A stretch of 64,000 bases of DNA, taken from positions 5,332,001 through 5,396,000 of the forward strand of contig NC_047071.1 of the NCBI RefSeq assembly GCF_902459465.1, in the 5' to 3' direction. Shown in pieces: positions 4,799 through 60,404 of the stretch. The stretch is from Asterias rubens (Eukaryota). Numbering within the stretch: position 1 is the first letter of the stretch; every line of letters begins with the position of its first letter. Below the pieces are notes generated by a model that saw nothing but the letters and a program-made list of their open reading frames with translations, was not told where the DNA came from and did no database searches. The translations under genes were made by a program, and so were the position numbers.

Positions 4799-7700
4799 AT
4801 TGTTGTAGTAGAACTCACCAAGTATCGTCACCATCCACACTAACACATAAGTCACTAGACCGATCCAGACCAGGGCCAACACGAAGGTCAAAGGGTACCA
4901 TCTCTGCCATCGTTTCAGAGAACAATTGGGTATTGTTAAATAGAACATAAGGGAGGCAGGGAAGCTCATCACCCAGATGAATCGTTGCGGGCCTCCGGAC
5001 GGCAGGATGAAAGGCGACAGGGTGTTCTTTTCTTCTTCTCCTATGAAAGAAAGGGGAAAACACACATGTTAAATAAATTAGACCCGGAGTTGCCCAAGGA
5101 AGTATACAAGTTTAAAAACTGTCATTAAAAGATGTGTCTTCAACAAGCCCCCGTGTCAATGTTCTTTGTAACTTTTTTAAATGATTGTTAGCATAAAAAC
5201 TTACTTGATAACGAGCAATGGAAAGCTGTTGATAGTATAACACATTGTGAGAAACGGCTCCCTCTGGAGTTATACGTATTTTGATAAAAGAGGTTTGTTC
5301 TCACTCAAATAAAAGACTTCGGGCCTGAAACCTTTTTTAGGCATCATAAAGCACACAATGGTGTTTTTCATTATTCTCTCCCAACTTCGATGACCAATTG
5401 AGTCCAAATTGTTCACAGATTTGTGACTTTATGCATATGTTGGTGTGGGATACACAAAGTGAGAATATTGGTGTTTGACAACTATCAAAGTTGTCCAGTG
5501 CCTTTATAATCAAGACAATGTTTATAGTAATGATGTAAAAACAAGTAAGATTTGAAACTTTGCATGGTGGAAAAACGAAGGTTTGCGGTAACACCATGTA
5601 GTGATAATCTCTATTGAGTTGAGGTGGTTCTGAAAAAACCCGTATGTTTCAACTCGACGTTTCGATCAGTATGCCCTGATCGTCTTCTGGATAAAACAAA
5701 ACAGAGAAAGGGTTAAACGCCCTCATATTTGCTGCCTTAACAAAAGGGAAAGTAAACAACAATGGTCTGCATAGGGAAGTGCTAAAGGGAGTGCTTGCTA
5801 CACAAGGAACTTTGTGCACAAAGTCTTTGAGGGATGGTAACTACATGGACAAAGGAAAGAACAATATATGTCTCCTTATGTGGATGCAGAAACGGGAATG
5901 TTAGTTTCCCGGTTTGTCATCTACCTTCGCTTTCTGATGTGTTACCTTCCTGCCCGTCTGTCTCTTGGGAAGAGTTGATGTTCTCATAAGACGAGCCTAC
6001 TGCCGTCTCCTCGGTAGGTTTCTCGGTGGGTTTTTCTTTCACGATGTGTTGCTGCTCCTCTTCGTCTTCGTGTCTCGTAACACAAGCTGAAAATCTTTCG
6101 ACTTGTCGCTTGATCACTGGGTCGAAGTACAAGAAGACGAGGTAGGCTGCGTACACTAGGAGAAAAACCATGGACTCGTACCTATAGAGTGGGTAAAGGA
6201 CATTATTTTATATATAATCTAATCTTTGCGTTAGCGTATTAAAGGGGTTCAACTCGTAAAATACGGACATTTGCGCAAATAGTCACGACGTTAACAAGTA
6301 TTCACCCCTCTTATATTTCGTTAACAAAAATCACAGTTTGTACCCCAGGGATAAATAGCTCCTTTACTTACCAGTGGACTTCATTGTCTAGTATAACCAA
6401 TGCAAGGCAAAAAATGCATACACAGTACCACATGGAGTCACGAGCAAGCGGCCATTTTGTCAGGTAGACGGTCTGAAAGTAAAAAAAAAAAAAAAAAAAA
6501 ATGGACGAACAGACATCATCAATTCGATTATCAAATAAAGCTGTGTTTACTAAGTGTAACACACCTTTATAAAGTCAGATTGTTCGCTTTTTTGATGATT
6601 GTGTATCGCTGATTAAATATCATCCTACTAACATAATATCTGACATGCATACCATAATATCGTGGAGGTTGATGTCGAGACTTAGGCCGTGTCCGAAACG
6701 ACGACTTCGGCTACAGCTACGTCTAGATCAGCGCGTCTACCAGTGTTGAAGAATAGGCAGACGCGCGCGATCTAGCCGTAGCTGTAGCCGAAGTCGCCGT
6801 TTCGGACACGGCCTTACTACAACAGGACACTTCCACACACGTGTTTGACCAATACACTAGCGGATACCTATTATTGAATCATACACAACTAACTAATGAT
6901 CATGAGGGCCCAGCATGACAACAAAGAATAGACTAGTGAGGACTTGACTGTCCCGGTTGAAAAAATTTCCTCGGAGGGTAGGCCATACAACCACACGGTA
7001 TACATGTTTATAATTTGATATCTCCATTTTATAATTGGTGTTCGATTCGTGTCATGGTGTGTCCCCCTCTCCTGTTTTTCATCATTGTGTCCCACGAATC
7101 TCAGTAATTCTGCCAAGTGTTTCAAGTTCCTACATAACATGGACCTCTTTTTCTCATGAGGTTTCCTCTCCGTAGTAAGGCTTAAAAGCCGGGTAATATT
7201 TTTTTGTCAATGGTGATTGATATTATAAAGAAAGATACAAGCAAAATCACATGTGAAAGTTTCAGCTACATACAGTGTCGACTTGCTGAGAAACTTTGAA
7301 GCACGAAACTGTCGCGGTATGTTTGGAAGAAAAATTAGCGAGGCCGGTGACAGCGCCACCAACCGCATCTCTGGACACAGCATTCGATAATGGACACCAA
7401 TACTCAGAAATCTAAGAAACGATTCATGCCTAATTTTTATTTTTTATTCAAATGTGTCTGGGGTGAAACATATAAATCCAAACTAAATTACTTCGACAAT
7501 AATCCTTTCTCAGAATAGATTTGACTAACATCCACAGCTGCAGTGATTATAGCCTTATTTACAGTAATGACGTTTTGGAGTAGGCCCTAGGCCTATTTAA
7601 ATATATATGACGTTAAACCCATAGAGAAAGGACTTTGTGTGTACCTGCATCATACAGAATGAATCATACATTTTCCTTCACTTGAAATACTCGTTGTTTG

Positions 7701-10700
7701 GCATAGGCCTACCAGCACATGTTAAGTAAAGTGCACCTAGCCACCAAGTTCGTTCTAGGCGAGTTATTTCAATAGGGTTGGGCTACAATAATGTTTATAC
7801 TCGATGATGGCATTGCCACAATTAAGGTTTTCAGACATAAGGTTGTTTCGGACGCATACAAAAACCAACTTGTAATATCACATTGTTTTCGAAATACCGA
7901 CACATGCACAACGTGAATACAATTCAAATGAAGACAACAAGAAACCGTTATTTGAGACTGCACGATTGCACTTTGTTATACTGTAGGAAGAAAGGCACAC
8001 TCAAAACTTGGTCAGCTGTTTTTTGTTTACGGTAATTTAAATTTTCTGGTAATTATGATGTCATGTAAGTTGTCTCACATGACAGTATATCCTATAGATC
8101 AGGAAGTTCCCTGACAGGAAATGCACGGTCTATATTATAAGTATCATCAAACTAGTTTCCGGTTTATATTATTGCAATGAAACAGAAAATGACAATAGAA
8201 AGGCCACTATTTTGTTGTCGTAATCACGGCCCGCATTAAAATTCTCATCGAGCTAGTGTCCAGTTTTTCACACACACCTAAACAGAAAATACAAAAAGGG
8301 CTGGTCTTTGATCAATAAAGCAAGCCTGTAAAGCATCTTGTAATTTGACGTTCTTTCTTGGCGGTGTGATTTTCGGCACTGAGGGTTTTTCAAATGATCT
8401 CCGAGAAACTCAGTTATAATTTAACTGATGGCCATTTTCAAGATTAAGATATTGCAATAAGTAACGTTGGAGCCACCCACCTGTCCTGCTAGAAGGCCGC
8501 AAAGCCCCACCACACATAGGATGTTAAACACAGCTGAGCCGATCACTGTACCAACTCCAATGTTCCCTTTGGCGATGAACACCCCTATAACATGGTTTAT
8601 TGGAAAATGGTTTGATTGCTGTTATTACACCTTGCATGTCTGCCTGTCTGTCTATCTGTCTGTCTTAATGATCTTCCCATCAAAGGGAACTCGGCAAACT
8701 CCTAACAAGTAAAGGGGATATAAACACCAAGCTGGAAACAGCAAATATCTCATACAAACATTTGTTTAACGTCTAGGACTGACAATCACAAGGTTGTGGG
8801 TACGAATCATACCAAGCTAGTCACTCATTTAACAATGAATAAGATTTGTGTGCGAATCTATGGAAAAAATACAAACGCCTTATAAACATAATAAAATATT
8901 TTAACAGAAGTGTATAGTTATTTTAACATGATTCAACAACTAGGGCATTAACTGTGAAAACATAACTAAAAATATATTCACCAAAAATGGAAGTGAAAAG
9001 CTCTGGAGCCGATCCTCCAATGGCCATAAACGATGCACCAGCAACATCCTCCGATAGGTTAAGAGCTGAAGTTTAGTAAAATAGAAGAAGTAGAAAAATA
9101 AAAAATATAACAATTTCATTTAAGAGGCACTTTATTTGGTGCATGTCTTAAATACATCGGAGGACTTAGATACCATGCCCTCCATTGCCCTGGTCTTGGC
9201 CTCGCTGCCCCCTTCAAAGTGTCCCATAGACTTTAAGATTTTGTTATGGAAGATATTCCTGATTTGGTTCAGAGGCCACACAGCCCTTTGCAAAATGAAA
9301 ACGGCCTTGCCCGCTCACCAAATGACGACAGCCAAGGCATGTTGGTGACAACAATAATTATATTGGCATAATGATAACGATCTGCTTAATACTTCCTTTG
9401 AATCAAGGTATACGGACAACAAAATTGGGACAACAGACTCTGGAGACTGCCTATACATAAAGTCGTTAATAAAAACACACGAAAGAAAAAAAAAACCAAC
9501 CAACAATTTGTTTGAGTATTATTTGAAAAAAAAAAAAAACCTAGCAGGCCTGTTCTTAAAGGAAATCTGCACTCTGGTGACATTGTTTATAAAACAGTTG
9601 TTTAACCATTGTAATTCAGTGCAACACACCTTTAATTTTAAAGTAAACATCGAAACAGCCTGACAGTCTGTACATTGAACTGAATTCATCATGTACAGGA
9701 AAATCCACACAACTTCTCTTTATACCTCAAGGTCTCCTGTGACCTTATTGTTCTGTTACTAGGTCTTTTTAACCTCTGGGTGGACGTGGGTGCGGAACTC
9801 GCAGTTATTTTAGCGATGACCCAAATATTTTGTCAGGTACCCGGATAGGATTTCAAATTTGCAACATTAAATTTTCTGCAGTAAATATTAACAAGTGGAG
9901 CTTGCCTTTATAAAGCTTACGAATTGCCCTATCTTTCAAAGTGCCTTACTTTATTTAATATACTAACATTTTTGATTAAAAGAAATGAATTTTTAAATTT
10001 TTATTTTGATCTTTAATTTTTAGTCTGGTGCTCATTAGACTTTGGCTCATTGTACATTACCTGAACACAGTGTCTCTAGTGAAGGCATGAAGTAGCTATC
10101 ACACACCAACGCCAGGACACCAAACAAGTAGCAGACAACAGCAAAGTTGATGAGCAAACCGCCGTGACGCAACACGTCTAAGCTCATCACATTTGGCGGG
10201 AAGTTGTCGATGCTGGGCGGGGTGCAGTTGAAATCATATGACGGAGAGAGCGTGGCTGCTTTATGCGGGAACATAAAAATAATGTTAAAACAGGGTAGCT
10301 TGTTGCAAAGGAAAACAAATCTCGCTTGAAAATAGTTTTTTTTTTTCAATGTTCTTGTGTGTGTGCACAAACGAGGTATTTCTCGTATGCTATTAAATTT
10401 TGGTGTTCATTATTTGCATGCAGTGCAGTTGGTTCAAACCAACTTTTCCAGTTAAACAATTTACTTTAGTATAAAGCAAAATGTTAACGGAACATTATAG
10501 TACTCGGTAATGCTGCAAGCTATGCTTAATGTATATTTCGAAAATAGTTATAAATGAGACCAAACGCCGTTTGACAAATTACAATCATTGGGGGAGTTAG
10601 TTTAAAGGGAAGGTACACGTTTGGTAATATCTCAAAACAAATATTAACTTAAAAACTGACTTGGTAGTGAACATTGGAGAGCTGTTGATAGTATAAAACA

Positions 10701-15197: not shown

Positions 15198-17513
15198 TTG
15201 GACTCTACGCCACCCATTTACATAGACAATACTGACATAGAACGTGAACTTATGGGCATAGACACTTCTAAAGCTTGTGGCCCAGACAACTTACCAGGCT
15301 TTATTTTGAAGTCATTTGCAACTATAATATGTAGCCCTTTGTCTTATCTTTTTAAAAGATCTCTATGTGAAGGTCAGTTTCCTGCATGTTGGAAAATTGC
15401 TAACATTGTCGCTATTCACAAATCCGGTAAAAAACAGAATGTAGCAAATTATAGACCAGTATCTTTGTTACCACTTGTTTCTAAAGTGTTTGAAAGGGTT
15501 TTGTGTACACAACTTGTACGTCATGTCCAGCCTGCTATCTCTGAACATCAGCATGGATTTGTACCTGGAAGGGATTGCACCACCAATCTTACTGCATTAT
15601 TACAGGAAGCTTATTCTGCAGTTGATCGGAGGGGGCAGCTGGACGTCATGTTCACTGACTTTTCGAAAGCTTTTGATCGGGTTGATCAAAAACTTCTTAT
15701 TCACAAACTTGCTTCATATCACATACATCCCCAATTACTAATTTTACTGCGTAATTATTTAAGTGAAAGGAAACATCGAGTAGTTGTTGATGGGGAATGC
15801 TCTAACTGGTATCCAGTTTTTTCAGGTGTACCTCAAGGTTCTGTACTTGGTCCGGTCTTATTTACATTGTTTATAAATGATTTGCCATCATGTCTCACAA
15901 ACAGATCTTTACTATTTGCAGATGATATGAAGGTTTTCCGTCAGGTTTTTAATGATTCCGATTGTGCTTCTTTACAGTATGATTTAGATAAAATACATTC
16001 CTGGTGTGCAACCTGGAAATTGCAACTTAACTTGAAGAAATGTTCTGTAATGAGTGTGACACTAAAAAAGAAGCCATGTTTGTTCAATTACACGATTTCT
16101 GATTGTATTTTAAACCGTGTTTCCACCCAGAAAGATCTTGGTATTTTTATAGATAGCAAACTTAATTTTGTTAGCCATGTTACTCATGTAGTGAAGAAAG
16201 TTAATCGCATGATTGGTCTAGTGTAGCGAAACTTCAGATGCTGTAAAAATGAACGTGTACTTCGAACCTTGTATTGTTCTCTTATTAGACCTCGATTGGA
16301 GCATTGTACTCTTGTTTTTAACTCAATTTCTCAATCACAATCTGACCGACTAGAAAGACTACAAAGGCGTTACTTGTTTTTTATGTACAAAGTTCTTCAC
16401 AACAACAATCAAGGTGATGTTACTTATTTGGAAATGTGTAAATTATTTAGCTTACCAACTCTTGCCCAGAGGAGAACAGTTAACGATTGCTTGTTCCTCT
16501 ACAAACATATCCACAGCAAGTATAAATTAACCACTGCTAATCCTTTCAGTTTTCATGTTCCAGAACGTCGTACTAGATCAGCTTCCAAGCACATCATGCA
16601 TGTTCCCATGAGCCGAGTTGATGTTACCAAAAAAGGGTTTGTTTCCAGAGTTTCGTCTTCATACAACCAGCTTCATGAATCATGCGATGTGTTTGGGGCT
16701 AAAACATTAAACTGTTTTCGCAGACAGCTAATTAAATTTGCTAAATAATATTTTTTATTTAATATTTAACTGTGAACATCTCATGTGCAGCTGCTGGTCA
16801 GTTGTAACTTCATCAAATTGCTTTGTAAATCTGAGTGTTTTTATTGTGTTTGTTTGTTCGTTGGGGTGTTTGTTGGTGTGTTTGTGTTTAAGTTGTTGTN
16901 NNNNNNNNNNNNNNNNNNNNNNNNNNNNNNNNNNNNNNNNNNNNNNNNNNNNNNNNNNNNNNNNNNNNNNNNNNNNNNNNNNNNNNNNNNNNNNNNNNNN
17001 NNNNNNNNNNNNNNNNNNNNNNNNNNNNNNNNNNNNNNNNNNNNNNNNNNNNNNNNNNNNNNNNNNNNNNNNNNNNNNNNNNNNNNNNNNNNNNNNNNNN
17101 NNNNNNNNNNNNNNNNNNNNNNNNNNNNNNNNNNNNNNNNNNNNNNNNNNNNNNNNNNNNNNNNNNNNNNNNNNNNNNNNNNNNNNNNNNNNGTGTGTTG
17201 TTCTGTTTGTGTATTCTTACTTCATGTGTTTGTTTTAATGTCCGATGTGTGTTTGTGTACTTGTTGGTATTCCCTGGTCTGTTTGATGTGGGTTTCGGTG
17301 TACTATTTTTGTCTACTTATAATAATGTTTTTATCAATGTTTAATTTTTAATGTTATATATTGTTGTATTTATATTGTATTTAAATTTATTTAAATTTAT
17401 ATTTATATTCATATTTAAATTTATATTTTTACATAGTTTTTAACGATTCCTGTAAGTGGCGGCTTTCCGCTGTTGGATATCAATAAATAAAAAAATAAAA
17501 TAAAATAAAATAA
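15198..17513 (+). mobile_element. 5'-truncated non-LTR retrotransposon (CR1/L2 group): RT domain plus C-terminal region, 3' UTR and (TAAAA)n tail
   Basis: RT motifs QHGF, DFSKAFD, GVPQGSVLGP, LFADD in 15198-16226. Same-frame continuation 16227-16748 (LYCSLIRPRLEHC) after a single TAG at 16224-16226. A-rich tail 17482-17513. The 3' UTR contains an N gap. Confidence 0.92.
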
Positions 17514-21506: not shown

Positions 21507-22365
21507 TTAAAAGAAATTGACCATGAATGGACCCCCAAGTAAACATTACGGCAATTCAAGTCAACACTTACCCGAACGCGTGGCTCAACTGAAGGAAATG
21601 GTTGAAGCAAAAGCGCGCCCTTGAACCAGTCTGGGCAGCATGCAGTTGGTTTCTGAACTCAACCAGAAGGGATAAAGCTTTATGAGTGAAATTTGTGCTA
21701 TGAATACATGCCCGTATAAGATCAATCACACGTGAGGACAAAAAATGAATACGATTAAATCTGTTCACTGATTGTACTTTTAAGGTGATATACAGGTTAG
21801 GTAGAGCTGACAGAACAACCACAGGCAGTGTTCATTAAAGTACAGTTTTCTCGAGTTAAGCTTCATTTCAGAGAAAAATATTTTGCCGAAATAAACTGTT
21901 CAAGTGTGAACTTCATTATTAGTAAGCTTTCAGCCAAAAATCTAACAATGGTATTTTCGGTACCCTTTATCAAAATTTGGTATTATACCTTTTAAAGGCA
22001 GCGCATACAGTATTCTATTTACGGGTGCCACCCGTATCCTACACCGACCCGCATGTTTATCACATCGATAATCAAAATGTTGATGCGATTTCAATTTCAA
22101 AGTAATGGAATTCCAATTTTTATTGGGCCTAGATTTCAGAAACGCATATAATTAACTAGCCAAAGTAGATTAATCTCTGTTCATAATGAAAAGGTAGTCT
22201 AGCAGTGTAAAAGCCATGCAGCTATAAATTTCTTCCAACCTACTGTTTTCCGTATATAAAAGGAAGTCGATTGTAGGTTTTGAAATTTTGCATGGTGGAA
22301 TAGGCCTAAAGTAAAACCAGTATTTGTCGAGTATAGTGTTGGTTCTGAAAAGAACCGGTGCTTAA

Positions 22366-23371
22366 AGGCAGTGCACACTATTGCATTGTCAAAGACTAGC
22401 CTTCACGGTTGGTGTATCTCAACATATGCATAAAGTAACTAACCTGGGAAAGGTTGAGGTCAATCGGTCGTCAAAGTTGCGAGATAATAATGAAAGAAGA
22501 AAACACCCTTGTCACACGAAATTGGAATTCCATTACTTTGAAATTGAAATCGCATCAACATTTTGATTATCGATGTGATAAACATGCGGGTCGGTGTAGG
22601 ATACGGGTGTCGCCCGTAAATAGACTGCTGTATGCGCTGCCTTTAAAAGGTATAATACCAAATATTGATAAAGGGTACCAAAAATACCGTTGTCAGATTT
22701 TTGGCTGAAAGCTTACTAATAATGAAGTTCACACTTGAACAGTTCATTTTGGCAAAATATTTTTCTCTGAAATGAAGCTTAACTCGAGAAAACTGTACTT
22801 CAAAACACAGCTGATTTCGGCTACAATGTGATCAATTTTCACGGTTTCACTCTTTTCTCTTGGATTTGGGGGTTGGTAATATTTGTTTTATTTGTCCAAT
22901 ATTCAAAGGTTTGTTATTTCATGTTTATTATTGGTCAGTGGTCACACAGTTAATGAACACTGCCTGTGGTTGTTCTGTCAGCTCTACCTAACCTGTATAT
23001 CACCTTAAAAGTACAATCAGTGAACAGATTTAATTGTATTCATTTTTTTTCCTCACGTGTGATTGATCTTATACGGGCATGTATTCATAGCACAAATTTC
23101 ACTCATAAAGCTTTATCCCTGCTGGTTGGGTTCAGAAACCAACTGCATGCTGCCCATACTGGTTCAAGGGCGCGCTTGTGCGTTTAGATGGTTGATTTCG
23201 AGACCTCAAGTTCTAAATCTGAGGTCTCGAAATCAAACTCGTGGAAAATTACTTCAGAGGGAGCCGTTTCTCACAATGTGTTGTACCATCAACCTCTCCC
23301 CATTGCTCGTCACCAGGAAAGGTTTTATGCTAATAATTATTTTGAGTAATTACCAATAGTGTCCACTGCCT
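22366..23371. mobile_element. Kolobok-like MITE carrying a ~660-bp insert (22521-23177) that is an inverted copy of 21611-22118
   Basis: TTAA|AGGCAGTGCACACTATTG…CAATAGTGTCCACTGCCT|TTAA. The body is interrupted at CACACGAA|…|GTGCGTTTAGATGG. Confidence 0.75.
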
Positions 23372-23403
23372 TTAACAACTCAACAGCAACAGCAACAGAG
23401 TCC

Positions 23404-23455
23404 AGAATTCTCCTGAAGACGATCAGAGCATACTGATCGAAACGTTGAGTCTTTT
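23404..23455 (+). ncRNA. Minimal type I hammerhead ribozyme motif (Penelope-like-element type)
   Basis: CTC-CTGAAGA(23413-19)-C-GATCAG/AGCATA/CTGATC-GAA-ACGT-T(23446)-GAG: core, 6-bp stem II, palindromic ACGT in place of helix III, short stem I. Confidence 0.7.
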
Positions 23456-23463
23456 TAAACACC

Positions 23464-23498
23464 GGTTCTTTTCAGAACCAATACTTACTCAAAAGAGA
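23464..23498 (+). promoter_or_regulatory. Histone-mRNA-type 3' stem-loop plus purine-rich downstream element in a non-histone repeat
   Basis: GGTTCT-TTTC-AGAACC (23464-23479), then AAAAGAGA at 23491-23498. An identical stem-loop lies on the minus strand at 22341-22356. Confidence 0.6.
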
Positions 23499-25574
23499 TA
23501 TTCACATGCTGTAATGGTAAAACAAGCGTTTTTAAGTCAAAATAAACAAAATTTAACCCATTTGTAAATACTGACTTTTTATGAACTGTCCTACTGTCAC
23601 GGTGGTATATCGTTTGTAAGAGGTAAGAGGTGAGCAGCTGAAGTAGACGGCACAAATTTGCAAAATAGTCACGACTATGGCTATCAAAACATAATGTTGG
23701 ATTAAATATACTGTTGGACAACAAGTGCAGTACGTCGCTATAGATTTTACCATAGAGTAAGGACAGAACAGTTTTAGATTTCGTAATGGTTGATCGTGGC
23801 TTTTATAGTCTACACGAAAGCCAATACATCTGTGGGGGCGTTTCGTGTGGCTGATGAAGAGGAATAACCTCGATCTCAGACTTGAAATCAAGTCTATACT
23901 TCATGTGTCGACCTACTAGGATTTTGACTTGTCTATAATAACAGTAAAATGTACCATGGAGGAATGTAATATTATAGTCCCTTGTTTATCACTGACGGAT
24001 ATGGCTGTTAAGTCATGTGATTGTGACTGTGAACAAAACAGAAGACATTGTGTTAAAGTTGTTTTGATTGAGTTGTGTGACCTATACAGTATATAATGAA
24101 AAGACGTCACTGCTACTTAAAGGGGACTTGAATACCACTAAATGCAACGGCAAATCAAACAAGATTTGGTATCCGTTTGCCATTTCAGAATAGTCATCTG
24201 AGAATTTTTTTAGATATTTTGTTAAGCCTAGCACAGTTAAAAATGAAATAAAGGTTTACTGGTAAGCTTTTTCCAGAGTAGGGGCATTGATGTCTGACTG
24301 TTGTCTTTTTCGTAGAAGTGTGCAAGTCGCCATAAAACTTTAAAAAAATTGATGCAGGGACATGCCAGGATGACTAAGATACAAACTGCATCTCTCTAGC
24401 ATTTTTAGTTCCAGAGTTATTCCAGAGCATTGCTGAAAGTTGTTAATTGTCCGGGCCTATTTTTTGTTGGTTGGGTTCCTGACTGCGCCGTGTGTTTGTA
24501 TACGTTGTATACACGCACAGTGTACGTCAATTTCTAATGGGTGCCTGCTCACGCCGTCGCATCTGGCCCCGCCTTAAAAATCGTCATAGCCCTTGAACAT
24601 GGCAATCCTGTGGTAGTAAAATTGTGAAGATTGATCATGATACTGGGATCGAAATTACCCGTTTTAAATTTTGTTTTTCAGCAATCAGCATGCTGCCATA
24701 TCAGTCGATGATGTCATCGTCAGCCAATCACCGTGCAGGAAAGCCATTTTGTCTATAGTTGACTTTTTCGTAATTTGAGATTTGGATTAACGGTGGAAAT
24801 CGCTGTATCCTGACTGAACTAGGTACGATCCGGTCTCGCTTTTAACATTTCCAGGTAGAATATGAAATAATCTATCCATACGTACTAATTGGGGACTGTT
24901 GCCGACATTCAATCAGAATGGGAACATTTTCCGTGTTTTTGTGACTTGTTTTCTCTGTTTTGAAGCAATTTTTTACGTACAAATTTCTCTTTTTAAAATT
25001 TGAGTTGCATCGATTGTTTTTATACATAACGATAGATATGCTCTTTGTTTCAATTTACTGGTAGATTATTTTGGTTGAGACTTTTCAGAAAAGGCTGAAA
25101 ATGACCGAATTCCAGAAGCCCTTTTGACTAATTAATATTCACATAGAGGTCACGCATAAAAAAACGATGCACATCCCCGCAGATAAATAACAAAGGAGAT
25201 TAGTGTACTGCGGGTAGACTGCTCTTTAGCAAATTTAGTTCCATTTATTCTATTGAAGAGTTTACTGAGTTTACTCCGGGGCCATTTTTTCCAGTGAATA
25301 TTTTTCTTTCTTTCTATTCGTCACAGTGCCGTGTGTTTGTTTAAACAATTATGTTTCCCTTGTATTATTGTATAAATAAAAGTTGTTATTTTGAACTGCC
25401 AGAGGCCAAGTTATGGAGCCCCTTGCGAATGTTGTGTAAAAACACACATTACAGATCTTACCTGATGTTCCGACATTTGCTGTGTTTCACTTTACGAGAT
25501 TGTTTAACGAAGTTTGGAATACATCCCAGATTAGGAAAATCAAGTTCAATATATCTCTCTCGCACTTCAATTAT

Positions 25575-51750: not shown

Positions 51751-52347
51751 CTACTTCTTTGGCTTGGTGGTCTTCTTCGGCTTTGCTGCTTTGGTGGCCT
51801 TCTTTGCCTTTGGCTTTGGACTCTTTGCGGCTTTGCTGGGCTTGGCGACTTTCTTTGATGGCTTGGCTGCTGTTTTCTTGGCTGCAACTTTCTTGGTGGG
51901 TGTCTTCTTGACGATTTTCTTTGGAGTCTTCTTCTTGGTTATCTTGGTTTTCTTGGCCTTCTCCTTCTTGGCTGCGGCTTTCTCTGCTTTCTTGGCTTTC
52001 ATCTCTGCTTTCTTTGCTTGATCCTTCTCTTTCTTGGCCTTGGCTCGTTCTTTGACCTTCTCCGCCTGTTCCTTGGCCTTGTCCTTTGCTGGGTCCAATT
52101 TGAATGAACCGGAAGCTCCCTTGCCCTTGGTCTGGATAAGAACTCCCTTCTGCACACCGGTATTGAGGGCTTTTCGGATGAAAACGGCCTGCCTGTCCAT
52201 GTCGACTTGGAATGTGTCCTTGATGTACTTTCTGATGGCTTGACTGGACGAACCGTTTTTCTCCTTCAGTGCCACGATAGCGGCAACCACCATCTTGATT
52301 GCTGGAGGGTGGGCCCGAACGGTTGCAGACTTTTTCACGGTAGCCAT
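51751..52347 (-). CDS. H1: Histone H1, copy 8
   Basis: Intact ORF. Confidence 0.95.
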
Positions 52348-53411
52348 GATGATAGAGAGAGATGATGCGAGGGAATCGTTTCGTAAGAAGCTTTACAGCG
52401 AGCAATACTGATGAGACCCACCGGACCGTCAGCCTTTTTCAAGGGTCACGGGTGGCTCTGAGCAGCCCCTGGGTCCATTCACGCTGCTCAATCAACCGGC
52501 GAGGCTCGGCGGTTCGCGTGGAGCTGGAATTTACTCCAATATTAGTGTGTTTCATTTTTCTTCTGATTTGCAAAATTCTTGTTTAAAATAGCATCGGACA
52601 ATTTCCCCATAACTGTAGATGTGTTGGTCAAGTTCTAACCTTTCCATGCATACAATTTTCTTTTACGAGGTCTCAATATCTAAGCCTGAAACGACCACTA
52701 TGAAATGACATTGTTTCCGATAGTGAAATTTTATTCATTTTTTTGTCGCATATAATGTTACATCGATTTATGTAACATGTGATTATTGCTTCAAATAATG
52801 ATGATGATCTTAGCAAGTCAATTAATCCAATCACGCAATAGTTGTTGTAAAATTGTCTTGCGACAATTTCGAGAAACAAACTCGTTTTTGTTATTTGGGC
52901 ATTATTGGTGCTTAAGGCAGTGGAGTCGCATGCAAGTTGATACATTCTTACTATTTCCGCCCTTCTGTGTACCCCCCCGTGTCTCTACTGCCCCCTTCAA
53001 AAAACAAACAAACAAACTAACAAACACCGCATAGTTATGTAAATTGGTACGTTTGTTTACATCAAATTCATCGTGTTTCGCCATTTTGTTTTGTTGCATA
53101 ATGCCCCCCCCTACATCACCGCTGCTTTTATGTAAGCTTGTGGGTTTGTTTTTATTAGATCCATCGTTTTTCGCCATTTTGTTTCTGTTACATAGTGTTT
53201 TTGATCAAACTAGTTACTTATTTATGTAATGTTTATGTATTTAATATTTTGGATGTATTTTTTTTATCGAAACAAATAAATTATCTGCCGATGTGATTAT
53301 TTAATTTTTCAATTATTTTTCCTAGACAAATGCAGGTGATAGTCTCTTTTTGTAAGTTGTGGCTCTGAAAAGAGCCGTTTGGTTTGGTTGATTGTCCCGG
53401 GTGGGAACTGA

Positions 53412-54008
53412 CTACTTCTTTGGCTTGGTGGTCTTCTTCGGCTTTGCTGCTTTGGTGGCCTTCTTTGCCTTTGGCTTTGGACTCTTTGCGGCTTTACTGG
53501 GCTTGGCGACTTTCTTTGATGGCTTGGCTGCTGTTTTCTTGGCTGCAACTTTCTTGGTGGGTGTCTTCTTGACGATTTTCTTTGGAGTCTTCTTCTTGGT
53601 TATCTTGGTTTTCTTGGCCTTCTCCTTCTTGGCTGCGGCTTTCTCTACTTTCTTGGCTTTCATCTCTGCTTTCTTTGCTTGATCCTTCTCTTTCTTGGCC
53701 TTGGCTCGTTCTTTGACCTTCTCCGCCTGTTCCTTGGCCTTGTCCTTTGCTGGGTCCAATTTGAATGAACCGGAAGCTCCCTTGCCCTTGGTCTGGATAA
53801 GAACTCCCTTCTGCACACCGGTATTGAGGGCTTTTCGGATGAAAACGGCCTGCCTGTCCATGTCGACTTGGAATGTGTCCTTGATGTACTTTCTGATGGC
53901 TTGACTGGACGAACCGTTTTTCTCCTTCAGTGCCACGATAGCGGCAACCACCATCTTGATTGCTGGAGGGTGGGCCCGAACGGTTGCAGACTTTTTCACG
54001 GTAGCCAT
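53412..54008 (-). CDS. H1: Histone H1, copy 9 (A121V)
   Basis: Intact ORF. Confidence 0.95.
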
Positions 54009-55073
54009 GATGATAGAGAGAGATGATGCGAGGGAATCGTTTCGTAAGAAGCTTTACAGCGAGCAACACTGATGAGACCCACCGGACCGTCAGCCTTTTT
54101 CAAGGGTCACGGGTGGCTCTGAGCAGCCCCTGGGTCCATTCACGCTGCTCAATCAACCGGCGAGGCTCGGCGGTTCGCGTGGAGCTGGAATTTACTCCAA
54201 TATTAGTGTGTTTCATTTTTCTTCTGATTTGCAAAATTCTTGTTTAAAATAGCATCGGACAATTTCTCCATAACTGTAGATGTGTTGGTCAAGTTCTAAC
54301 CTTTCCATGCATACAATTTTCTTTTACGAGGTCTCAATATCTAAGCCTGAAACGACCACTATGAAATGACATTGTTTCCGATAGTGAAATTTTATTCATT
54401 TTTTTGTCGCATATAATGTTACATCGATTTATGTAACATATGATTATTGCTTCAAATAATGATGATGATCTTAGCAAGTCAATTAATCCAATCACGCTAT
54501 AGTTGTTGTAAAATTGTCTTGCGACAATTTCGAGAAACAAACTCGTTTTTGTTATTTGGGCATTATTGGTGCTTAAGGCAGTGGAGTCGCATGCAAGTTG
54601 ATACATTCTTACTATTTCCGCCCTTCTGTGTACCCCCCCCCCCCCCGTGTCTCTACTGCCCCCCTTCAAAAAACAAACAAACAAACTAACAAACACCGCA
54701 TAGTTATGTAAATTGGTACGTTTGTTTACATCAAATTCATCGTGTTTCGACGTTTTGTTGCATAATGCCCCCCTACATCACCGCTGCTTTTGTGTAAACT
54801 TGTGGGTTTGTTTTTATTAGATCCATCGTTTTTCGCCATTTTGTTTCTGTTACATAGTGTTTTTGATCAAACTAGTTACTTATTTATGTAATGTTTATGT
54901 ATTTATTAGTTTGGATGTATTTTTTTTATCGAAACAAATAAATTATCTGCCGATGTGATTATTTAATTTTTCAATTATTTTTCCTAGACAAATGCAGGTG
55001 ATAGTCTCTTTTTGTAAGTTGTGGCTCTGAAAAGAGCCGTTTGGTTTGGTTGATTGTCCCGGGTGGGAACTGA

Positions 55074-55670
55074 CTACTTCTTTGGCTTGGTGGTCTTCTT
55101 CGGCTTTGCTGCTTTGGTGGCCTTCTTTGCCTTTGGCTTTGGACTCTTTGCGGCTTTGCTGGGCTTGGCGACTTTCTTTGATGGCTTGGCTGCTGTTTTC
55201 TTGGCTGCAACTTTCTTGGTGGGTGTCTTCTTGACGATTTTCTTTGGAGTCTTCTTCTTGGTTATCTTGGTTTTCTTGGCCTTCTCCTTCTTGGCTGCGG
55301 CTTTCTCTACTTTCTTGGCTTTCATCTCTGCTTTCTTTGCTTGATCCTTCTCTTTCTTGGCCTTGGCTCGTTCTTTGACCTTCTCCGCCTGTTCCTTGGC
55401 CTTGTCCTTTGCTGGGTCCAATTTGAATGAACCGGAAGCTCCATTGCCCTTGGTCTGGATAAGAACTCCCTTCTGCACACCGGTATTGAGGGCTTTTCGG
55501 ATGAAAACGGCCTGCCTGTCCATGTCGACTTGGAATGTGTCCTTGATGTACTTTCTGATGGCTTGACTGGACGAACCGTTTTTCTCCTTCAGTGCCACGA
55601 TAGCGGCAACCACCATCTTGATTGCTGGAGGGTGGGCCCGAACGGTTGCAGACTTTTTCACGGTAGCCAT
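55074..55670 (-). CDS. H1: Histone H1, copy 10 (K76N, A121V)
   Basis: Intact ORF. Confidence 0.95.
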
Positions 55671-56439
55671 GATGATAGAGAGAGATGATGCGAGGGAATC
55701 GTTTCGTAAGAAGCTTTACAGCGAGCAACACTGATGAGACCCACCGGACCGTCAGCCTTTTTCAAGGGTCACGGGTGGCTCTGAGCAGCCCCTGGGTCCA
55801 TTCACGCTGCTCAATCAACCGGCGAGGCTCGGCGGTTCGCGTGGAGCTGGAATTTACTCCAATATTAGTGTGTTTCATTTTTCTTCTGATTTGCAAAATT
55901 CTTGTTTAAAATAGCATCGGACAATTTCCCCATAACTGTAGATGTGTTGGTCAAGTTCTAACCTTTCCATGCATACAATTTTCTTTTACGAGGTCTCAAT
56001 ATCTAAGCCTGAAACGACCACTATGAAATGACATTGTTTCCGATAGTGAAATTGTATTCATTTTTTTGTCGCATATAATGTTACATCGATTTATGTAACA
56101 TATGATTATTGCTTCAAATAATGATGATGATCTTATCAAGTCAATTAATCCAATCACGCAATAGTTGTTGTAAAATTGTCTTGCGACAATTTCGAGAAAC
56201 AAACTCGTTTTTGTTATTTGGGCATTATTGGTGCTTAAGGCAGTGGAGTCGCACTAATATTTATGTATTTAATATTTTGGATGTATTTTTTTTATCGAAA
56301 CAAATAAATTATCTGCCGATGTGATTATTTAATTTTTCAATTATTTTTCCTAGACAAATGCAGGTAATAGTCTCTTTTTGTAAGTTGTGGCTCTGAAAAG
56401 AGCCGTTTGGTTTGGTTGATTGTCCCGGGTGGGAACTGA

Positions 56440-57036
56440 CTACTTCTTTGGCTTGGTGGTCTTCTTCGGCTTTGCTGCTTTGGTGGCCTTCTTTGCCTTT
56501 GGCTTTGGACTCTTTGCGGCTTTGCTGGGCTTGGCGACTTTCTTTGATGGCTTGGCTGCTGTTTTCTTGGCTGCAACTTTCTTGGTGGGTGTCTTCTTGA
56601 CGATTTTCTTTGGAGTCTTCTTCTTGGTTATCTTGGTTTTCTTGGCCTTCTCCTTCTTGGCTGCGGCTTTCTCTGCTTTCTTGGCTTTCATCTCTGCTTT
56701 CTTTGCTTGATCCTTCTCTTTCTTGGCCTTGGCTCGTTCTTTGACCTTCTCCGCCTGTTCCTTGGCCTTGTCCTTTGCTGGGTCCAATTTGAATGAACCG
56801 GAAGCTCCCTTGCCCTTGGTCTGGATAAGAACTCCCTTCTGCACACCGGTATTGAGGGCTTTTCGGATGAAAACGGCCTGCCTGTCCATGTCGACTTGGA
56901 ATGTGTCCTTGATGTACTTTCTGATGGCTTGACTGGACGAACCGTTTTTCTCCTTCAGTGCCACGAAAGCGGCAACCACCATCTTGATTGCTGGAGGGTG
57001 GGCCCGAACGGTTGCAGACTTTTTCACGGTAGCCAT
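56440..57036 (-). CDS. H1: Histone H1, copy 11 (I24F; 32-bp promoter deletion)
   Basis: Intact ORF; deletion junction TACTGATGA|CACGGG at 57103/57104. Confidence 0.92.
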
Positions 57037-58078
57037 GATGATAGAGAGAGATGATGCGAGGAAATCGTTTCGTAAGAAGCTTTACAGCGAGCAATACTGA
57101 TGACACGGGTGGCTCTGAGCAGCCCCTGGGTCCATTCACGCTGCTCAATCAACCGGCGAGGCTCGGCGGTTCGCGTGGAGCTGGAATTTACTCCAATATT
57201 AGTGTGTTTCATTTTTCTTCTGATTTGCAAAATTCTTGTTTAAAATAACATCGGACAATTTCCCCATAACTGTAGATGTGTTGGTCAAGTTCTAACCTTT
57301 CCATGCATACAATTTTCTTTTACGAGGTCTCAATATCTAAGCCTGAAACGACCACTATGAAATGACATTGTTTCCGATAGTGAAATTTTATTCATTTTTT
57401 TGTCGCATATAATGTTACATCGATTTATGTAACAAATGATTATTGCTTCAAATAATGATGATGATCTTAGCAAGTCAATTAATCCAATCACGCAATAGTT
57501 GTTGTAAAATTGTCTTGCGACAATTTCGAGAAACAAACTCGTTTTTGTTATTTGGGCATTATTGGTGCTTAAGGCAGTGGAGTCGCATGCAAGTTGATAC
57601 ATTCTTACTATTTCCGCCCTTCTGTGTACCCCCCCCCCCCCGTGTCTCTACTGCCCCCCTTCAGAAAACAAACAAACAAACTAACAAACACCGCATATTT
57701 ATGTAAATTGGTACGTTTGTTTACATCAAATTCATCGTGTTTCGCAATTTTGTTTTGTTGCATAATGCCCCCCCCCCCCTACATCACCGCTGCTTTTATG
57801 TAAGCTTGTGGGTTTGTTTTTATTAGATCCATCGTTTTTCGCCATTTTGTTTCTGTTACATAGTGTTTTTGATCAAACTAGTTACTTATTTATGTAATAT
57901 TTATGTATTTAATATTTTGGATGTATTTTTTTTATCGAAACAAATAAATTATCTGCCGATGTGATTATTTAATTTTTCAATTATTTTTGCTAGACAAATG
58001 CAGGTAATAGTCTCTTTTGTAAGTTGTGGCTCTGAAAAGAGCCGTTTGGTTTGGTTGATTGTCCCGGGTGGGAACTGA

Positions 58079-58677
58079 CTACTTCTTTGGCTTGGTGGTC
58101 ATCTTCGGCTTTGCTGCTTTGGTGGCCTTCTTTGCCTTTGGCTTTGGACTCTTTGCGGCTTTGCTGGGCTTGGCGACTTTCTTTGATGGCTTGGCTGCTG
58201 TTTTCTTGGCTGCAACTTTCTTGGTGGGTGTCTTCTTGACGATTTTCTTTGGAGTCTTCTTCTTGGTTATCTTGGTTTTCTTGGCCTTCTCCTTCTTGGC
58301 TGCGGCTTTCTCTGCTTTCTTGGCTTTCATCTCTGCTTTCTTTGCTTGATCCTTCTCTTTCTTGGCCTTGGCTCGTTCTTTGACCTTCTCCGCCTGTTCC
58401 TTGGCCTTGTCCTTTGCTGGGTCCAATTTGAATGAACCGGAAGCTCCCTTGCCCTTGGTCTGGATAAGAACTCCCTTCTGCACACCGGTATTGAGGGCTT
58501 TTCGGATGTGAAAACGGCCTGCCTGTCCATGTCGACTTGGAATGTGTCATTGATGTACTTTCTGATGGCTTGACTGGACGAACCGTTTTTTTCCTTCAGT
58601 GCCACGATAGCGGCAACCACCATCTTGATTGCTGGAGGGTGGGCCCGAACGGTTGCAGACTTTTTCACGGTAGCCAT
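58079..58677 (-). CDS. H1: Histone H1, copy 12, with an apparent 2-bp frameshift at ~58508 (pseudogene or sequencing error)
   Basis: 599 nt versus 597; CGGATGTGAAAACGG versus consensus CGGATGAAAACGG. Confidence 0.65.
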
Positions 58678-59740
58678 GATGATAGAGATAGATGATGCGA
58701 AGGGAATCGTTTCGTAAGAAGCTTTACAGCGAGCAATACTGATGAGACCCCACGGACCGTCAGCCTTTTTCAAGGGTCACGGGTGGCTCTGAGCAGCCCC
58801 TGGGTCCATTCACGCTGCTCAATCAACCGGCGAGACTCGGCGGTTCGCGTGGAGCTGGAATTTACTCCAATATTAGTGTGTTTCATTTTTCTTCTGATTT
58901 GCAAAATTCTTGTTTAAAATAGCATCGGACAATTTCCCCATAACTGTAGATGTGTTGGTCAAGTTCTAACCTTTCCATGCGTACAATTTTCTTTACGAGG
59001 TCTCAATATCTAAGCCTGAAACGACCACTATGAAATGACATTGTTTCCGATAGTGAAATTTTATTCATTTTTTGTCGCATATAATGTTACCTCGATTTAT
59101 GTAACATATGATTATTGTTTCAATAATGATGATGATCTTGAGCAAGTCAATTAATACCAGATCACGCAATAGTTGTTGTCAAATTGTCTTGCGACAATTT
59201 CGAGAAACCAACTCGTTTTTTGTTATTTGGGCATTTATGGTGCTTAAGGCAGTGGAGTCGCATGCAAGTTGATACATTCTTACTATTTCCGCCCTTCTGT
59301 GTACCCCCCCGTGTCTCTCTACTGCCCCCCTTCAGAAACAAACAAACAAACTAACAAACACCGCATAGTTATGTAAAATTGGTACGTTTGTTTACATCAA
59401 ATTCATCGTGTTTCGCCATTTTGTTTTGTTGCATATGCCCCCCTACATCAACCGCGCCTTTTTTGGTAAACTTGTGATTTTGTTTTTTATTAGATCCATC
59501 GTTTTTTCGCCATTTTGTTTCTGTACATAGTGTTTTTGATCAAACTAGTTACTTATTTATGTAATGTTATGTATTTAATATTTTGGATGTATTTTTTTTA
59601 TCGAAACAAATAAATTATCTGCCGATGTGATTATTTAATTTTCAATTATTTTTCCTAGACAAATGCAGGTAATAGTCTCTTTTGTAAGTTGTGGCGCGAA
59701 AGAGCCGTTGGTTTGGGTTGATTGTCCCGGTGGGAACTGA

Positions 59741-60234
59741 CTACTTCTTTGGCTTGGTGGTCTTCCTTCGGCTTTGCTGCTTTGGTGGCCTTCTTTGCCT
59801 GTTGGCTTGGGACTCTTTGCGCTTTGCTGGGCTTTGGCGACTTTCTTTGATGGCTTGGCTGCTGTTTTCTTGGCTGCAACTTTCTTGGTGGGTGTCTTCT
59901 TGACGATTTTCTTTGGAGTCTTCTTCTTGGTTATCTTGGTTTTCTTGGCCTTCTCCTTCTTGGCTGCGGCTTTCTCTGCTTTCTTGGCTTTCATCTCTGC
60001 TTTCTTTGCTTGATCCTTCTCTTTCTTGGCCTTGGCTCGTTCTTTGACCTTCTCCGCCTGTTCCTTGGCCTTGTCCTTTGCTGGGTCCAATTTGAATGAA
60101 CCGGAAGCTCCCTTGCCCTTGGTCTGGATAAGAACTCCCTTCTGCACACCGGTATTGAGGGCTTTTCGGATGAAAAATGAAAACGGCCTGCCTGTCCATG
60201 TCGACTTGGAATGTGTCCTTGATGTACTTTCTGA
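59741..60234 (-). CDS. H1: Histone H1, copy 13, partial, many indels, 5' end in the N gap
   Basis: Clear homology; low-quality sequence at the contig end. Confidence 0.6.
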
Positions 60235-60404
60235 NNNNNNNNNNNNNNNNNNNNNNNNNNNNNNNNNNNNNNNNNNNNNNNNNNNNNNNNNNNNNNNNNN
60301 NNNNNNNNNNNNNNNNNNNNNNNNNNNNNNNNNNCTACTTTGTTTGGGTAAATTTGTCTGTAGACTTTTAAACCAAACAATTTATTAACAATACTGGAAG
60401 TGTT

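Follow-up and report, generated by a model that had tools for sequence, protein, structure and literature searches.

Fusion of a minimal hammerhead motif to a histone-type stem-loop in a probable Penelope-type retroposon superfamily of Asterias rubens

A dispersed repeat of the sea star Asterias rubens joins a minimal hammerhead ribozyme motif to a histone-type stem-loop and a purine box. We studied this repeat at positions 23404-23498 of a window of 64,000 nucleotides (nt) from contig NC_047071.1 (assembly GCF_902459465.1, positions 5,332,001 to 5,396,000 of the forward strand; window positions are used throughout). On balance, we favor the reading that the repeat belongs to a high-copy, non-autonomous retroposon superfamily of the Penelope type, that this superfamily is mobilized in trans, and that the hairpin of its 3' terminal module is kept for protein binding. 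The module comprises, in order, a minimal hammerhead, 11-17 nt, the histone-type stem-loop, a conserved AC-rich block, and an optional tail of 30-40 nt; in subfamily 1, one of the three subfamilies described below, the purine box lies 10 nt downstream of the stem-loop.

The copy under study extends from 23376 to 23511 (+), and genome matches together with end mapping identified it as a dead, 5'-truncated member of subfamily 1 with an intact CUGAAGA core. Its early 3' end was mapped inside the conserved ACATGGTGTTACC block, and in a DNA search of the genome the interval 23390-23512 was covered by matches, with 83-91% identity among those scored. The minimal type-I hammerhead (23410-23449, +) consists of the 5' strand of stem I, CTC (23410-23412), the core CTGAAGA (23413-23419), an extra C (23420), stem II, in which GATCAG (23421-23426) pairs with CTGATC (23433-23438) around the loop AGCATA, the stretch GAA-ACGT (23439-23445, of which GAAA is 23439-23442), T17 (23446), and GAG (23447-23449), with the cut predicted between 23446 and 23447. 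Helix II has 6 base pairs (bp), the first of which is G10.1-C11.1; the palindromic A-CG-U occupies 23442-23445, and a stable helix III is absent. A spacer of 17 nt separates the predicted cut from the histone-type stem-loop GGTTCTTTTCAGAACC (GGUUCU-UUUC-AGAACC; 23464-23479, +), which fits the metazoan pattern GGYYYU/ARRRCC. The purine box AAAAGAGA (23491-23498, +), which resembles a histone downstream element, begins 11 nt past the stem, a distance that is 10 nt in both the family consensus and H1. The following interval (23499-23511, +) is the start of a block common to all subfamilies (ACATGGTGTTACCGCAAACC in the consensus), truncated in this copy, and is a putative start site of Penelope-type reverse transcription. 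Both the hammerhead and the histone-type hairpin were present in the minimum free energy fold, with a whole-stretch z-score of only -1.3. The initial annotation, made from the letters of the window, had described this succession of CUGAAGA, 6-bp stem II, extra C, ACGU, stem-loop, and purine box, and it proved correct base for base; likewise, the comparison that it drew with the H1 3' end of the window was exact, the module copying a histone-type 3' signal in its stem, its loop, and a purine box at the same offset, and each feature that describes a minimal Penelope-type hammerhead was present.

These features can be compared with published descriptions. Minimal hammerheads of Penelope elements are described as having an additional base behind A9, the pair G10.1-C11.1, a helix II that is long and a helix I that is very short, and a palindrome at 15.2-16.2 (PMC4209133). 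The hammerhead at 23410-23449 shares with them the core CUGANGA...GAAA and all of these traits (PMC4209133; PMC11167929), and it also shares their position ~95-130 nt upstream of the 3' ends of the copies; the CUGANGA core is present in our copy and fails in the dominant subfamily 2, which has CAGAAGA. With the Rfam hammerhead models, no match was obtained for our copy at E up to 10 or for five other copies at E up to 1. The Rfam hammerhead models require helix III, so minimal hammerheads fall outside their reach, and the lack of a match is therefore explained by the minimal motif, which has no helix III by design. With the Rfam Histone3 model, the stem-loop of our copy scored 29.8 bits (E 8.5e-7 over 301 nt) against a gathering score of 34, and its flanks are CACC on the 5' side and AATAC on the 3' side rather than A-rich and of the ACCCA type. 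As a reference, a genuine H1 histone stem-loop at 40733-40748 (-), one of 12 in the H1 tandem array, scored 36.7 bits, and the twelve H1 genes of the window scored 35-36.7 bits, above the gathering score. The H1 array itself (40694-60388, -) contains ~12 genes with a period of ~1.66 kilobases (kb) and an Rfam-positive stem-loop in each; several of its units are truncated or frame-broken (for example, at 43689-44156 and at 58-60 kb), and N gaps occur near 60.1 kb.

The combination is a property of a large family. A DNA search of the genome returned about 2,000 first-look candidates, and word counts gave 2,071 matches to the ribozyme 31-mer with up to 2 mismatches, 2,857 to the exact 16-mer GGTTCTTTTCAGAACC, 1,438 to the canonical GGCTCTTNTCAGAGCC, and 817 sites at which GAAACGT is followed, after 12-18 nt, by GGCTCTTNTC; the reversed control of each search returned 0, and the counts are well above chance expectation. 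By comparison, Pfam Histone marked 34 places in the genome. Set against these 34 places, the hairpins linked to hammerheads number 2,857 of the variant form and at least 817 of the canonical form; most histone-type hairpins in the genome are thus transposon-borne. A consensus built from 27 copies retained the hammerhead, the stem-loop, the purine box 10 nt past the stem, and then the ACATGGTGTTACCGCAAACC block. The view of the initial annotation that the fusion is a family feature was therefore upheld by the genome-wide search and consensus that it had proposed, and the related copies that it placed at 5608-5692 (-) and 22341-22356 (-) are real, corresponding to the insertions at 5543-5695 (-) and 22273-22361 (-).

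Three subfamilies were distinguished. Subfamily 1, which includes the copy at 23376-23511, has the core CUGAAGA and a GUU cut triplet, and its exact 31-mer occurs 59 times; subfamily 2 has CAGAAGA and a GUC cut triplet, with 794 exact 31-mers. Judging from these counts (794 vs. 59), we take subfamily 2 to be the younger and more successful of the two. The change of U4 to A at a conserved position of the hammerhead core is expected to cripple catalysis, and the purine box of this dominant subfamily is degenerate (TTAGAGA). In subfamily 3 (817 exact sites), GAAACGTC followed by GAGACCAAACC is joined directly to the canonical GGCTCTTTTC, so that the canonical stem-loop GGCTCTTTTCAGAGCC stands immediately behind the 3' end of the hammerhead; behind helix II of subfamilies 1 and 2, canonical stem-loops were found at only 20 sites. 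Helix II of subfamily 3, GACTAG/CTAGTC, is fully compensated with respect to GATCAG/CTGATC, as read in one decayed copy (locus L010, about 700-800 in plus-strand positions, the copy lying on the minus strand), and the 5' flank of its stem-loop is the A-rich CCAAACC. Subfamilies 1 and 2 were further represented in Asterias amurensis, in marine metagenomes, and in contigs of another assembly; the subfamily 1 copies of the other assembly retain the purine box, and words of subfamily 2 occurred in RNA and DNA runs labeled with several organisms. The fusion of hammerhead and stem-loop has been kept in three subfamilies with differing spacers and helix II sequences.

The insertion pattern of the copies led to the assignment of the element class. 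The 5' ends of the copies are variable, indicating 5' truncation; about one-third of the copies have an inverted, truncated partner just upstream; and the 3' ends fall into two classes, 60-74 nt (11 of 31 copies) or 95-101 nt (16 of 31) past the start of the stem-loop. Because of these three features and the lack of a linked RT/GIY-YIG ORF, we classed the family as a non-autonomous retroposon, probably mobilized by Penelope machinery. The copies are short and free of open reading frames (ORFs). Most of them are dispersed singles or inverted pairs, and one direct pair, 1,027 nt apart, was found at locus L013. A search for tRNA heads in long copies found none, and a walk in the 5' direction from long copies ran into 116-bp tandem repeats and nested foldbacks, with no full-length element delimited.

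A Penelope reverse transcriptase (RT) was shown to initiate internally at two adjacent sites, in an AC-rich stem-loop ~85-92 nt past the hammerhead cut, and these two start sites explain the optional 30-40 bp tail of genomic Penelope copies (PMC11167929). The geometry of the two 3'-end classes of the family is that reported for the Penelope element in the same study. A Penelope-like RT/endonuclease would therefore, as suggested by this geometry, copy the RNAs of the family in trans, starting at the AC-rich block or at the end of the tail; with such an internal start, the template RNA would run uncut through the stem-loop. Ribozyme cleavage, in turn, would be dispensable for spread, because core position 4 is A in the dominant subfamily and because insertion in vitro persists in hammerhead mutants (PMC11167929).

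Candidate sources of this activity reside in the genome, and a resident Penelope-like RT/endonuclease would mobilize the family in trans. Matches to GIY-YIG sit in uninterrupted frames of 921 or 931 amino acids (aa) and belong to many Penelope-like elements; the 921-aa protein has the domains RVT_1, DUF8422, HTH_animal, and GIY-YIG, and hundreds of relatives. Near the end of its 3' untranslated region (UTR), a minimal hammerhead with a palindromic AGCU is followed by ~30 nt without a stem-loop, and the 3' end of a second Penelope family, read in A. amurensis (locus L091), likewise has a hammerhead without a stem-loop. Stem-loop copies that lie near the latter element are separate insertions. 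As a side observation, the 921-aa element (loci L062-L090, for example L079, L082, and L086) is present with dozens of uninterrupted ORFs, and its 3' end (...CCCTATTCATT) often abuts a variable microsatellite or tandem repeats of 18-30 nt.

At its start, the family tail (GAAACGTYGAG..TTAAC) is similar to the entire short tail of the A. amurensis Penelope element, and from this likeness the histone-type piece appears to have been added beyond the ancestral 3' end. The segment would have been captured from the 3' flank of a host gene, just beyond the ancestral Penelope tail. Among the real histone-type 3' ends that were compared, those of two nanos paralogs on contig 3 are the closest. The 3' end of these paralogs, ~100 nt past the zinc-finger domain, carries a histone-type stem-loop and a purine box (..ACACC-GGCTCTTCTCAGAGCC-AACACATATTCAAAAAAGAGAT..; L108:1351-1374 and L109:1351-1374, both -); the 3' UTR of the contig 10 nanos gene (locus L107) is ordinary and lacks a stem-loop. 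In a comparison of 70 nt, the subfamily 1 module matched one nanos paralog 3' end at 56 positions and H1 at 48, the two paralogs being identical to each other at 60 of 70. The post-stem alignment of subfamily 1 with nanos was reached by 0 of 5,000 shuffles, as against 51 of 5,000 for H1. [quoted passage not shown]

We then considered whether the stem-loop forms the 3' end of the element RNA, as the initial annotation had proposed in suggesting the use of the histone pathway. Histone-type cleavage falls 4-5 nt past the stem and is performed by SLBP plus the U7 small nuclear ribonucleoprotein (snRNP). If these factors cut the transcript there, a poly(A)-less RNA that terminates in the stem-loop would result. 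The motif itself is what such a process would use: stem and loop agree in full with the histone consensus, AAAAGAGA is at the same offset as in H1, the purine box was kept in the subfamily 1 copies of another assembly, subfamily 3 has a canonical stem-loop with an A-rich flank, and the nanos paralogs, whose ends are of this kind, suggest that the pathway serves non-histone RNAs in sea stars. However, a transcript cut at this position would lose the purine box and what follows, and every copy carries the box together with a further 50-85 nt, reaching as far as 85 nt past the stem. The RNA that was reverse-transcribed must therefore have extended beyond the presumed cut, and histone-type cleavage did not make the template RNA. 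This inherited downstream sequence is the strong line of evidence, from the genomic copies, that the histone-type module is not used to end the RNA that is copied. In addition, subfamily 2, which is dominant and younger, has a decayed purine run, the Rfam Histone3 score is under the gathering score, and RNA reads run through the stem with no pile-up of ends. We thus consider 3'-end formation by SLBP and U7 snRNP very improbable. An Rfam search of the genome for U7 gave no match, the controls being equally silent.

The RNA evidence came from the raw reads of four RNA-seq runs of 2026 from a related species, mapped on the subfamily 2 copy. Each run placed 5,000-8,000 reads on this copy, equally on both strands. 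No pile-up of RNA ends was seen at the ribozyme or the histone site in these four runs, and reads crossed the stem-loop and the box; this read-through gives no support to the histone-pathway reading, short of refuting it. More than 90% of the mapped reads carry CAGAAGA. The absence of ends at the ribozyme cut was read on a copy with a mutated core. A few "goes back" joints were seen among these reads, and the copy at 23376-23511 had no match among the runs. The runs X27 and X28 are dominated on window 5430-5830 by one transcript that contains a subfamily 2 copy; agreement within the consensus of their loose ends is 0.98-0.99 (more than 1,200 reads), and one variant lacks 5579-5645. A host transcript of the related species thus carries a subfamily 2 copy at high expression. 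A separate repeat at 5444-5513, adjoining the subfamily 2 copy, has several-hundred-fold RNA read coverage in the related species.

Block-by-block comparison of two consensuses, assembled by hand for subfamilies 1 and 2, indicated where the module is constrained. The two differ at 2 of 42 positions in the hammerhead, 4 of 12 in the spacer, 0 of 16 in the stem-loop, 9 of 25 in the post-stem segment, and 0 of 19 in the AC-rich block. The stem-loop, with 0 of 16 against 13 of 37 in the adjoining spacer and post-stem segments (Fisher p 0.005), thus shows the excess conservation over its flanks whose lack the initial annotation would have counted against its proposal. At the third position of the stem, subfamily 3 has C-G, as do H1 and nanos; subfamilies 1 and 2 have U-A there, two metagenome copies have U.G, and all 54 stem cells of the nine sequences compared are paired. 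Read along these sequences, the change of the third pair is a compensatory path that keeps the pyrimidine-purine orientation of the histone consensus. The covariation test that the initial annotation had called for gave one compensatory pair with all cells paired, and its statistic is weak. Loss of the ribozyme core and of the purine box is tolerated, yet the hairpin was kept, and this pattern points to a bound structure, not a cleavage signal. SLBP is the probable binder, since the hairpin has the stem and loop of genuine histone messages and, in subfamily 3, their flank as well. A hairpin bound by a protein, most likely SLBP, would serve as an internal element for stability, storage, or coupling to the cell cycle or germline.

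The main alternative binder is a Penelope protein. The hairpin would then be a recognition or positioning element for the Penelope RT/endonuclease, its histone likeness would reflect its capture origin only, and SLBP would be uninvolved. The position of the hairpin between the hammerhead and the inferred RT start agrees with such a role, as does its conservation along with hammerhead helix II and the AC-rich block, and, for one Penelope element, RT initiation has been located in a stem-loop region 3' of the hammerhead (PMC11167929). Nevertheless, such a hairpin is missing from the resident autonomous Penelope tails that were read, and the inferred starts of RT are located 45-85 nt downstream of the family hairpin; moreover, the compensatory change with its pyrimidine-purine orientation and the unchanged UUUC loop match the needs of SLBP rather than those of an arbitrary hairpin, and we regard this explanation as unlikely. 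Still less probable, in our estimation, is that the histone-type segment is a neutral passenger, acquired from a host 3' flank through one read-through event and conserved in appearance since the subfamilies are young. Retroelements do pick up 3' flanks, and the decay of the purine box in subfamily 2, the weak covariation statistic, and RNA data without processing would all be expected of a passenger, but the differences between subfamilies flank the stem-loop on both sides yet spare it (0 of 16 vs. 13 of 37), and the fusion persists in three subfamilies with differing spacers and helix II and in the data of several species.

Several observations weigh against the reading that we favor, of a Penelope-mobilized superfamily with a protein-bound hairpin. 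In tblastn searches with Penelope proteins, no Penelope ORF was found in the window, in 60 genome loci (which include 30 family copies, each with 1.5 kb of upstream sequence), or in 9 metagenome contigs, and the linked RT/GIY-YIG ORF that the initial annotation had thought worth seeking is thus absent from these sequences. Both of the Penelope families that were read end ~25-30 nt past the hammerhead with no stem-loop. As for the hairpin, the other family copies scored only 20-28.5 bits with Rfam Histone3 against the gathering score of 34, and the 5' flank in subfamilies 1 and 2 is CCACC, unlike the A-rich flank of genuine histone stem-loops. The constraint test compared consensuses assembled by hand, and the covariation consists of one compensatory pair in a hand-picked set of nine stem-loops, a result that 61 of 500 shuffles reach. 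The RNA reads are from another species, from libraries that were possibly poly(A)-selected and have no histone control, and were mapped on a subfamily 2 copy with a weak box. Finally, the comparison that bears on the donor gene covered the 3' ends of the nanos paralogs and H1.

Comparison with known systems placed the family between several of them. With Penelope elements, it shares the two alternative 3' ends, the inverted partial partners, and the 5' truncation; it differs in that no RT/GIY-YIG ORF is attached to the copies and in that a histone-type stem-loop and a purine box stand between the hammerhead and the 3' end, of which PMC4209133 and PMC11167929 make no mention. Animal non-LTR (long terminal repeat) retrozymes are likewise short, ORF-less, hammerhead-bearing, present in high copy number, and thought to be mobilized by Penelope elements (PMC7229834; doi 10.64898/2026.07.22.740005), and a preprint of 2026 derives them from Penelope terminal repeats (Li, Clavereau and Pollet, doi 10.64898/2026.07.22.740005). 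Retrozymes, however, are defined by tandem units that give circular RNAs via active type-I hammerheads, whereas the family is mostly dispersed or inverted and its dominant subfamily 2 has a broken ribozyme core. The word histone is absent from the key papers on Penelope hammerheads and retrozymes (including PMC7229834 and doi 10.64898/2026.07.22.740005). The signal for histone pre-mRNA 3' processing has the same 6-bp GGYYYU/ARRRCC stem, UUUC loop, and purine box at the H1 offset, and the canonical GGCUCUUUUCAGAGCC with an A-rich flank recurs in subfamily 3; in contrast to that signal, the family hairpin is internal to the copied RNA with no RNA ends at the site, and it combines the CCACC flank (subfamilies 1 and 2) with Rfam scores under the gathering score and a decayed purine run (subfamily 2). 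As in 3' transduction, and in short interspersed elements (SINEs) that share the tails of long interspersed elements (LINEs), a short host-derived 3' segment is fixed in a retroposon tail; the difference is that the captured piece is a specialized signal for RNA processing or protein binding with signs of selection. Histone 3'-end machinery has also been linked to retroelement sequences in human HERV1/LTR12, which contain U7-complementary motifs and in which U7 pairing reportedly represses LTR transcripts, with no SLBP stem-loop or ribozyme involved (PMC11417402).

Other elements of the window clarify the setting of the locus. An inverted, 5'-truncated partner copy at 22273-22361 (-) lacks the hammerhead and comprises the stretch between the stem-loop and the long 3' end (..CAAAACCTAC), both included. 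Between this partner and the copy at 23376 lies a miniature inverted-repeat transposable element (MITE; 22362-23375) of ~1 kb that inserts at TTAA and is outside the family; it is TTAA-flanked, has the terminal inverted repeats TTAAAGGCAGTG.../...CACTGCCTTTAA, and contains and is surrounded by nested inverted repeats of 230-285 nt, and its ends recur at locus L061 and beside the family copy of locus L022. With the MITE removed, the 23376 copy joins the 22273-22361 partner head-to-head. The subfamily 2 copy at 5543-5695 (-) has CCAGAAGA (U4 to A), a GUC cut triplet, an imperfect stem-loop GGGTTTTTTCAGAACC, and the long 3' end. Elsewhere in the window, 5S rRNA matches at 28515-28631 and 29604-29720 (+; 64 and 58 bits) have an unpaired, non-canonical terminal helix and are probably 5S-derived repeat modules rather than working genes. 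Adjacent ORFs of 342 and 159 aa at 15198-16748 (+), followed by an N gap, have RT motifs of non-LTR retrotransposons and are unrelated to the repeat.

Hammerhead-bearing, Penelope-derived retroposons and the histone stem-loop are each known; their fixed fusion is new as far as the searchable literature shows, and in agreement with the initial annotation, full-text literature searches found no paper that combines the two. Sea-star oocytes and embryos are a classic system for the histone-message pathway, and if SLBP binds the hairpin, a pathway regarded as exclusive to histone messages has been exploited by a mobile element. The family also constitutes a natural experiment: subfamily 2 spread after the loss of ribozyme U4, which suggests that cleavage is not needed for spread, and after the decay of the purine box, which shows the same for the box, while the hairpin was kept throughout. 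The likeness to the nanos 3' ends raises the question of an exchange of RNA-ending signals between transposons and germline genes. In a speculative extension, to which we attach only a small probability, the retroposon superfamily would have adopted the SLBP-binding hairpin of histone-type, nanos-like messages as a passport, with SLBP directing the element RNAs into the maternal or S-phase storage of histone mRNAs, where new insertions are heritable, and more than 3,600 consensus SLBP sites would thereby have been scattered in the genome. If this is true, the scattered sites could act by titrating SLBP, or they could supply host genes, for instance the nanos paralogs, with histone-type endings.

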